Origin: Saccostrea cucullata
Taxonomy: Eukaryota
DNA length: 64,000 nucleotides
Direction of reading: 5' to 3'
Assembly (NCBI RefSeq): GCF_032062105.1
Contig: NW_026935306.1
Location: forward strand, 1-64,000
Shown here in pieces: positions 13,466-14,162 of the stretch; position 1 is the first letter of the stretch; each line of letters begins with the position of its first letter. The notes below the pieces were generated by a model, which worked only from the letters and a program-made list of their open reading frames with translations, was not told the DNA's origin and did no database searches. A program made the translations under genes and the position numbers.

Positions 13466-14162
13466 TCATGTACCTGCATGTACCTGGACTTCATTATTGA
13501 CTACTGCTTGAGACTCCTTTACTTCATCATTGACTTCTGCTTGAGACTCCTTTACGTCATCATTTCCTTCTGCTTGAGACTCCTTTACTTCATCATTGAC
13601 TTCTGCTTGAGACTCCTTTACTTCATCATTGACTTCTGCTTGAGACTCCTTTACTTCATCATTGACTTCTGCTTGAGACTCCTTTACTTCATCATTGACT
13701 TCTGCTTGAGACTCCTTTACTTCATCATTGACTTCTGCTTGAGACTCCTTTACTTCATCATTGACTTCTGCTTGAGACTCCTTTACTTCATCATTGACTT
13801 CTGCTTTAGACTTACGTTCAATGCTATCATCGATCAACTCTACGTAACGGTTAATATTCGTGTAACTTGCATTAACACTTTCGTTTGTGGTATGTAAGAC
13901 CTCCAGATATGAACCATCTGCATTATTAGGAATAATGTAGGATCCGCCCCTAACTTGTTCCTTGTCATTCAGAGATTCACGTTCTTCTCTTTGTTCACGC
14001 AGATGATCATAATTTTCGTCTTGTTCTTCAATCATTTCATAATCAGGTTCATTGTAGGGATTATTTGATGAGGTAAAATTTGATTCATATAGACTATTTG
14101 TTGTCTTTGGAACATTTGGAAGGCGCATTAAATCTTTCCTTCTCTTTCGCAAAAGCATTTTC
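13466..14162 (-). CDS. Gene A exon 18, cytoplasmic tail with ITAM, further Tyr motifs and acidic repeats
   Basis: cacag|G in phase 2; [47 protein letters not shown]..([11 protein letters not shown])x10. Confidence 0.85.

Follow-up and report, generated by a model that had tools for sequence, protein, structure and literature searches.

An ITAM-like tyrosine pair in the multi-tyrosine tail of a putative kringle receptor family of oysters

Signalling from ITAMs, the tyrosine-based activation motifs of immunoreceptors, to the kinase Syk lies at the heart of vertebrate antigen and Fc receptors, and outside vertebrates it has been documented for very few proteins, namely Draper and the oyster receptor CgIgR. 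In Draper-type receptors Src42A phosphorylates the ITAM, and Shark, a kinase of the Syk family, binds it (PMC4503800; PMC6219719). CgIgR of Crassostrea gigas was shown experimentally to bind CgSyk via its ITAM and to drive ERK, which means that an ITAM-Syk pathway exists in oysters; the ITAM consensus has a spacer of 6-8 residues between the two tyrosine motifs, or of 6-12 as the oyster literature has it (PMC6994640). Here we describe an ITAM-like pair of tyrosines in the tail of a putative receptor of the oyster Saccostrea cucullata, encoded by the RefSeq gene LOC134242470 (model XP_062580541.1, P0007 below; 682 residues, "uncharacterized protein"). The gene lies on the minus strand of what we call the window, that is the whole stretch of 64,000 nucleotides analysed (positions 1 to 64,000 of contig NW_026935306.1, assembly GCF_032062105.1). 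An initial annotation of the window, made from its letters, had proposed a canonical ITAM within a dense array of SH2-docking sites. Our analysis leads us to propose that the tail is the phosphotyrosine docking platform of a type I receptor with kringle and 12-cysteine modules on the outside, and that the tyrosine pair would bind the tandem SH2 domains of Syk, a reading that in our judgement is evenly poised between right and wrong.

The tail exon and its splice to the membrane helix

The whole cytoplasmic tail is encoded by one terminal coding exon at 13466-14162 on the minus strand, as given by the open reading frame, the splice acceptor and its phase, and identical to the C-terminus of the RefSeq model. 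The open frame that contains it extends from 14233 down to the stop codon at 13466 and contributes 231 codons plus the stop to the exon. The acceptor consists of a polypyrimidine tract and an AG at 14164-14163. The first exon base, 14162, completes a split arginine codon; full codons begin at 14161, from which tail residues are counted here. A basic juxtamembrane stretch of 10 residues, suited to stop transfer (14135-14162; KMLLRKRRK), follows directly after the transmembrane (TM) exon. The ITAM-like core spans E38 to L54 (17 residues) and occupies 14000-14050, exactly where the initial annotation had located it. In the window copy it consists of YEMI at Y41 and YDHL at Y51 separated by a spacer of six residues (x6), and an acidic residue precedes Y41 (E-P-D-Y in this copy, D-P-D-Y in the family consensus). 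At the level of sequence the copy thus has the marks of an ITAM: two Yxx[L/I] motifs, a spacer of 6, an upstream acidic residue and a cytoplasmic location. Around the core we found the membrane-proximal Y25 in an L-Y-E context (14087-14089) as well as all five further motifs that had been listed together with the basic stretch. These are two YxxP sites, YNEP (Y36-P39, 14045-14056) and YIIP (Y75-P78, 13928-13939, followed by a conserved N80), then YLEV (Y85-V88, 13898-13909), the YxN site YTNI (Y100, 13853-13864) and YVEL (Y106, 13835-13846). The last lies in the context N-R-Y-V-E-L, which does not fit the regular expression [S/I/V/L]-x-Y-x-x-[I/V/L] of the immunoreceptor tyrosine-based inhibition motif (ITIM), and no other site of the window copy fits it either. 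The ITAM-like pair, as we read the tail, is one element of a multi-site docking region in which all eight tyrosines are conserved.

The last 108 codons of the tail are made of a 33-nt tandem repeat (13488-13812, 9.8 copies, 96% matches) that encodes an acidic 11-residue repeat at the C-terminus; it is specific to this paralog, and other paralogs end differently. The repeat appears to be recent. Pfam matches on the tail (DUF1103, Apolipoprotein, NOP2_rpt) were rejected as spurious products of the low complexity of the 11-residue repeat. AlphaFold gave the tail a pLDDT of 25-31 and predicted the TM helix besides, in a model that is poor overall and built on a shallow alignment. This would fit an intrinsically disordered tail bearing short linear motifs.

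The initial annotation had made its reading dependent on the splicing of this frame to a TM exon. Exons of P0007 map onto the window at 100% identity, and together with tblastn they place a TM exon of 67 nt, encoding a hydrophobic helix of 21 residues, at 17336-17402 on the minus strand. This exon ends in ATGAG followed by a GT donor, and its final AG together with the first G of the tail exon gives arginine, so that the frame is kept. The intron between the two exons (14163-17335, GT..AG on the minus strand) is removed in contigs from two public sequencing runs, X1 and X3: the Logan contigs have a joint from 14161/2 to 17335/6 that skips 3173 bases with the ends CT..AC. In X1 the joint contig is 433 nt long, with 4 differences in 349 nt of the tail exon, 35 nt on the TM side and 99% identity. 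The same joint was found in two X3 contigs that come from a relative about 94% identical; this relative keeps both tyrosines of the pair, and within the motif it differs by a synonymous leucine codon and by N50 to D. Coverage ends at the edge of the tail exon, with a depth of 0 in the bins at 14212-14344 (X1 and a third run, X2). The tandem repeat at 13488-13812 was excluded from the stretch compared with the public-run contigs. That X1-X3 are RNA is only a guess and the case for splicing rests on the GT-AG joint and on the exon-limited coverage; the clean removal of a GT-AG intron in X1 and X3 indicates that these runs contain spliced cDNA. The RefSeq model uses the same junction, and the tail-exon acceptor stands at the same place and in the same phase in 28 of 28 paralogs. 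The dependence of the initial annotation on this splice is therefore borne out by the RefSeq model, by the phase and by the joints in X1 and X3.

The basic residues on the tail side of the helix and the signal peptides of relatives indicate that the tail lies on the cytoplasmic side of a single-pass type I receptor. The TM helix is free of charged residues and thus gives no hint of pairing with a DAP12-like adaptor.

Conservation of the tail and its possible meanings

A six-frame search of the species' own 1.17-Gb assembly with the tail exon gave 56 matches, a count inflated by haplotigs since the assembly is broken into 23,869 contigs and contains copies that are identical (L028 and L029) or 99% alike (L009 and L013). 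More than 40 of the matches have open frames, and they are often clustered on single contigs (C23118, C20365, C10283, C13519). From these we aligned 28 paralogous tails that are 36-63% identical to that of the window (alignment A1). Y41 is invariant in 28 of 28. Conservation reaches at least 90% at Y25, Y36, Y51, Y75, Y85 and Y100 and likewise at K6, R7, R8, E26, P39, E45/E46, L54, P78, N80 and V88. While tyrosine accounts for 7% of all residues, it occupies 7 of the 25 columns with this degree of conservation. Both tyrosine codons occur in comparable numbers at Y25, Y36, Y51, Y75, Y85 and Y100 (TAT/TAC 12/15 at Y25, 13/14 at Y51, 8/19 at Y100), and at Y41 there are 27 TAT and 1 TAC. The mixed codons mean that synonymous change accumulated while tyrosine was held and, as judged from this codon pattern, the tail tyrosines are shown to be under purifying selection. 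The distance from Y41 to Y51 is fixed at 10 residues, with 11 (a spacer of x7 instead of x6) in L030 and L045 only; unlike this segment, the stretches between Y51 and Y75 and after Y100 abound in indels. An ITAM-like form, in which V or M may also stand at +3 of the first tyrosine, is present in 26 of the 28 tails, a YxxP site in all 28 and a YxN site in 22, and asparagine stands at +2 of Y100 in about three quarters. Divergent paralogs of 32-40% identity still carry D-P-D-Y-x-x-[I/L]-...-Y-E-Y-L. One or several tyrosines are lost in L028/29, L046 and L049, copies that look decayed.

Some paralogs have tails of a different make. In one subfamily (L002, L007, L017 and L021 on G000:C9812, C5380, C12938 and C10283, with P0003 and P0004) a unit of about 48 residues with YxxP and YLEV is duplicated two to three times. 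Nine of the 28 paralogs (L009, L011-L016, L018-L022 etc.) have S-P-Y-I-D-L at the last tyrosine, which fits the ITIM regular expression, and some paralogs may therefore carry motifs of the activating and the inhibitory type together. The RefSeq models P0002, P0006 and P0011 consist of few extracellular residues, TM helix and tail only, and are either truncated models or short adaptor-like chains.

In other species the tail, used for a word search, brought up a single protein, from S. echinata, and the ectodomain module brought up Saccostrea proteins only. A profile search with the tail against 1.84 billion representative proteins gave 16 matches, all but one of them in S. cucullata, S. echinata or Ostrea edulis; a cockroach repeat protein matched by the profile (P0013) was rejected as a compositional false positive. 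The pattern D-P-D-Y-x-x-[I/V]-x6-Y-x-x-L recurs in the proteins of O. edulis and S. echinata. Those of O. edulis read Y-[VL]-D-P-D-Y-Q-T-[I/V]-E-E-I-N-D-G-Y-Q-H-L and have a YxxP site, a Y-L-Q-I site and the same kringle/12-cysteine ectodomain. Conservation of the tyrosine spacing had been put forward as a check of the initial annotation, and indeed the pair with its spacing, like the YxxP and YxN sites, is kept in paralogs, in S. echinata and in O. edulis. The family is tandemly expanded and, by these searches, restricted to oysters.

Could the pair be a chance match in a tyrosine-rich, acidic tail of low complexity, or the exon of a dead gene copy? The pattern Yxx[LI]-x6-8-Yxx[LI] arises in 2.3% of composition-matched shuffles of the 116-residue non-repeat tail, which is weak evidence for a single sequence, and a gene model without signal peptide and a tail with a recently expanded repeat would be in accordance with decay. 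Yet the motif persists, amid synonymous changes of its codons, in three species and in 26 of 28 paralogs, and the exon is spliced, occurs in cDNA-like contigs and stays open over all of its 231 codons. Since the motif is conserved across paralogs a chance match is excluded, and we consider the explanation as a whole largely refuted and very improbable. We hold it very probable that the tail truly serves in phosphotyrosine signalling, with Syk and others as putative partners.

A more serious alternative is that the tail is a multi-site phosphotyrosine scaffold, a LAT/Gab-type adaptor fused to a receptor, in which each tyrosine is an independent site for a single SH2 domain and the ITAM match is a by-product of two neighbouring sites placed in an acidic kinase-substrate context. 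The similar degree of conservation of all eight tyrosines is in accordance with this, and so are V or M at the first +3 position in 9 of 28 tails, the single loss of one tyrosine of the pair in L028, L046 and L049, and the internal duplication of the YxxP-YLEV module in L002, L007 and L021 that would be expected of a docking array. Furthermore Y-E-[I/M]-I is similar to pYEEI, the optimal ligand of Src-family SH2 domains. The fixed spacing of the pair amid an otherwise indel-tolerant tail, the leucine conserved to at least 90% at +3 of the second tyrosine and the presence of a Syk gene argue instead for a unit of two, and the copies with single tyrosine losses look generally degenerate. On balance we hold independent docking sites to be the main rival explanation, though an unlikely one.

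The same tyrosines could also act without phosphorylation. Four of the motifs (YEMI, YDHL, YLEV, YVEL) fit the sorting signal YxxPhi, an acidic cluster lies between them and the tail is disordered, so that one may think of an endocytic or scavenger receptor directed by YxxPhi motifs and acidic clusters to AP-2 endocytosis or sorting. However AP-2 needs neither the conserved proline at +3 of Y36 and Y75 nor the common asparagine at +2 of Y100; that P39, P78 and this asparagine are kept is predicted by the specificity of SH2 domains and not by AP-2 sorting. Eight conserved tyrosines and a fixed spacing also exceed what sorting would need, and we regard a pure trafficking role as improbable.

The docking platform that we favour would work as follows. 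Clustering of the receptor by a ligand would lead a Src-family kinase to phosphorylate the conserved tail tyrosines. Doubly phosphorylated Y41/Y51 (Y-E-x-[I/V]-x6-Y-x-x-L in an acidic context) would bind the tandem SH2 domains of oyster Syk, while the two pYxxP sites would recruit SH2 adaptors of the Crk/Nck type, the pYxN site one of the Grb2 type and the pYLxV site another protein with a single SH2 domain. The S-P-Y-I-D-L site of the nine paralogs could recruit SHP2. Phosphorylation, every binding partner, the cell type and the role in hemocyte phagocytosis that the initial annotation had suggested are all inferred from sequence.

Several observations weigh against this platform. The strict ITAM regular expression is found in only 17 of the 28 tails, V or M replacing L/I at the first +3 in 9. 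With x6 the spacer is as short as the ITAM consensus allows; to call the motif canonical, as the initial annotation did, was an overstatement, even though the sequence marks of an ITAM are there. Classical mammalian ITAMs mostly have spacers of x7-8. As the eight tyrosines are similarly conserved, only the fixed spacing singles out Y41/Y51 as a bidentate unit. The 5' end of the window copy is uncertain, since its RefSeq model starts without a signal peptide. Protein word and profile searches found no member in Crassostrea/Magallana, where oyster ITAM-Syk signalling was demonstrated, a provisional result as only the own genome was searched as DNA. Finally phosphorylation, binding and site of expression are all predictions.

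Signalling partners, ectodomain and neighbouring sequence

A docking ITAM would call for a Syk-type kinase in the same genome. We found a gene at about 61-68 kb on the minus strand of G000:C20884 (L042) with the layout SH2, short interdomain without ankyrin repeats, SH2, kinase. Its N-terminal SH2 domain has its best match in the Protein Data Bank (PDB) in SYK (E 6.5e-17) followed by ZAP-70, the first exon of its second SH2 domain opens with M-P-W-F-H-G-S-I-S-R, and the best consistent matches of its kinase exon are SYK (E 1.6e-20) and then ZAP-70. Judged by this layout and these matches the gene is the Syk orthologue of S. cucullata and of Syk type, not Shark type. Src/Frk-like SH2-kinase genes are present as well; an SH2 half-exon gave mixed matches to Frk/Fgr/Src and to SHP2. 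Tandem-SH2 loci on C13551 and C13359 that were first suspected to be Syk proved SHP2-like by their motifs. By motif only there are three SHP2/corkscrew-like loci of this kind (G000:C13551:225-232 kb; C13359:5-8.4 kb, plus strand, and 16-19.4 kb, minus strand); the two on C13359 stand head-to-head on one contig, and there may be duplicates or haplotigs among the three. A further tandem-SH2 locus, on C17301, is presumably RasGAP-like, judged by eye.

Upstream of the TM exon, and like it on the minus strand, P0007 has an extracellular stalk exon at 17511-17567. Four exons (23090-23173, 22514-22660, 22117-22230 and 20753-20899; together 20753-23173) then encode a membrane-proximal 12-cysteine helical module pair, supported by alignment A3 and without Pfam match. 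A kringle exon of the gene lies at 27162-27413 (PF00051, E 9e-19). The kringle at 27162-27446 scores 68 bits against a Pfam gathering cut-off of 34.3, which places P0007 among kringle-domain proteins; kringles above the gathering score are also found in P0003, P0005, P0016 and P0017. An S/T-rich linker exon of the model follows at 27475-27651 with small linker exons 5' of it, and the first exons of the model, which encode a module half, map to 30382-31723.

The RefSeq model starts at 31723 and lacks a signal peptide. Signal peptides are present in the relatives P0005, P0016 and P0020-22. On the minus strand further upstream we found another module at 33541-33859 by exon mapping, a second kringle exon at 44017-44232 (PF00051, E 7.7e-19) and a candidate signal-peptide exon of 16-18 residues at 45420-45468, which has a GT donor in a phase that fits the kringle exon and resembles the N-terminus of P0016. 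In view of the architecture of P0016 from O. edulis the exon at 44017-44232 is probably the true first ectodomain unit of LOC134242470, and the model is probably truncated at its 5' end. With this putative 5' extension the real gene would probably consist of two units of kringle plus 12-cysteine module, stalk, TM helix and tail over about 32 kb.

The 12-cysteine module is a unit of about 170 residues formed by two halves of six cysteines each; such modules lie at 20753-23173 and within 30382-33859 (minus strand; alignment A3). AlphaFold predicts it to be all-helical in poor models (pLDDT 62.5 for the module and 47.7 for full-length P0005). The module gave no hmmscan match in Pfam even at E 10, and its low-confidence model gave no match in the PDB by Foldseek at E <= 0.001. 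The nematode domain DUF19 (PF01579), which also has 12 cysteines, was considered and rejected: its Atlas score of 0.80 is below the lead threshold and the profile did not support it. The module is therefore left unclassified. Mean pairwise identity among 12 family proteins is 0.76 for the kringle, 0.63 for the juxtamembrane stretch, 0.57 for module A and 0.52 for the ITAM block, and then 0.41 for module B and for the TM helix and 0.40 for the distal tail.

Elsewhere in the window a kringle exon at 2933-3151 and the module exon that follows it at 833-1078, both on the minus strand, belong to another family member downstream, the TM helix and tail of which would lie beyond the window start; this third kringle plus module (833-3151) implies a tandem gene array. 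A neighbouring gene has an exon for a SUEL-type galactose/rhamnose-binding lectin domain at 60391-60729 (minus strand; PF02140, E 4.7e-22). A non-LTR retrotransposon occupies 50329-53009 and 55743-56108 on the minus strand, with an AP-endonuclease (PF03372), a reverse transcriptase (PF00078, E 1e-35) and a zinc-knuckle reading frame nearby. Intronic repeats at 14744-15142 and 17537-17800 reach a summed contig depth of thousands to about 97,000 in the cDNA-like runs with many mutual joints, and appear to be an abundant transcribed family of interspersed repeats. Runs of N are found at 6858-7010 and 25986-26123.

Comparison with known systems

The oyster tail resembles the classical ITAM chains (Ig-alpha/beta, CD3, FcR-gamma, DAP12) and FcgammaRIIA in having an upstream acidic residue, two YxxL/I motifs about 10 residues apart and a disordered tail. 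The expected logic would also be alike, with phosphorylation by a Src-family kinase and then docking of the tandem SH2 domains of Syk, as predicted for the oyster from sequence. FcgammaRIIA and the oyster receptor also share an uncharged TM helix and a motif placed on the very chain that binds the ligand. The oyster tail differs from the classical chains in that it has no sequence homology to them, an x6 spacer, often V at the first +3 and six further conserved tyrosines, and its ectodomain is built of kringle and 12-cysteine modules, not of Ig domains. In these further tyrosines it recalls LAT-type adaptors, which have a disordered tail with several conserved tyrosines (YxN and others) for SH2 proteins of the Grb2, PLC-gamma and Crk type. 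LAT however has almost no ectodomain and no ITAM, whereas the oyster protein combines its docking array with a large ectodomain.

Among invertebrate proteins CgIgR is, like the oyster family described here, a type I receptor whose own tail bears an ITAM, but it has five Ig domains and its tail, EGDYTEL...YEKL with a spacer of x8, is unrelated in sequence (PMC6994640). Draper, CED-1 and MEGF10 are likewise single-pass receptors with an ITAM and further tyrosines in their own tail (PMC4503800; PMC6219719). They differ by an ectodomain of EGF repeats, a longer ITAM spacer, an NPxY motif and their single-copy state, and the kinase in the oyster genome is of Syk type. The hemITAM lectins Dectin-1, CLEC-2 and DNGR-1 carry the tri-acidic, Syk-recruiting DEDG-YxxL (PMC11624271), which the family consensus E-E-Q-D-E-G-Y-E-H-L resembles; a [DE][DE]x-Y-x-x-L context is found in 22 of the 28 tails. 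In these lectins, however, the hemITAM has a single tyrosine at the N-terminus of a type II receptor. The oyster protein is a predicted type I receptor with paired tyrosines, the window copy reading D-E-N-Y-D-H-L with a second tyrosine upstream, and thus falls outside the hemITAM class. A loose vertebrate analogue is GPNMB, a type I protein with a kringle-like extracellular region and a hemITAM phosphorylated by Src (PMC6609797). It is not homologous and only kringle-like, and it has a PKD domain and one tyrosine motif plus a dileucine.

These likenesses lead us to speculate that Saccostrea and Ostrea evolved a large tandem family of self-signalling immunoreceptors of their own, in which a variable sensor of kringle and 12-cysteine modules is joined to an invariant tail that unites a Syk-docking unit of ITAM/hemITAM type with LAT-like Grb2/Crk sites and, in some paralogs, an ITIM. 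We offer this wider scenario tentatively and think it more doubtful than the docking platform itself. If it is true, receptor signalling that pairs activation with inhibition would have been invented independently in Lophotrochozoa. The value of the case is limited by the degeneracy of the motif and by its being wholly in silico. Even so the family, with dozens of copies that combine an ITAM-like multi-tyrosine tail with a non-Ig ectodomain, provides testable candidates for receptors of immunity or damage in oysters, animals of commercial importance that readily fall ill. The family also offers a natural experiment in the evolution of tyrosine tails, with duplication of docking modules, ITIM-like paralogs and decaying copies.

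Literature searches on kringle plus ITAM receptors in molluscs returned nothing on the kringle/12-cysteine tail family. None of the systems compared here is homologous to it, and ITAM is in this context the name of a motif class. ITAM-bearing self-signalling receptors are already known; what is new is a lineage-restricted, expanded family of putative kringle/12-cysteine receptors that has a conserved ITAM-like multi-tyrosine tail.

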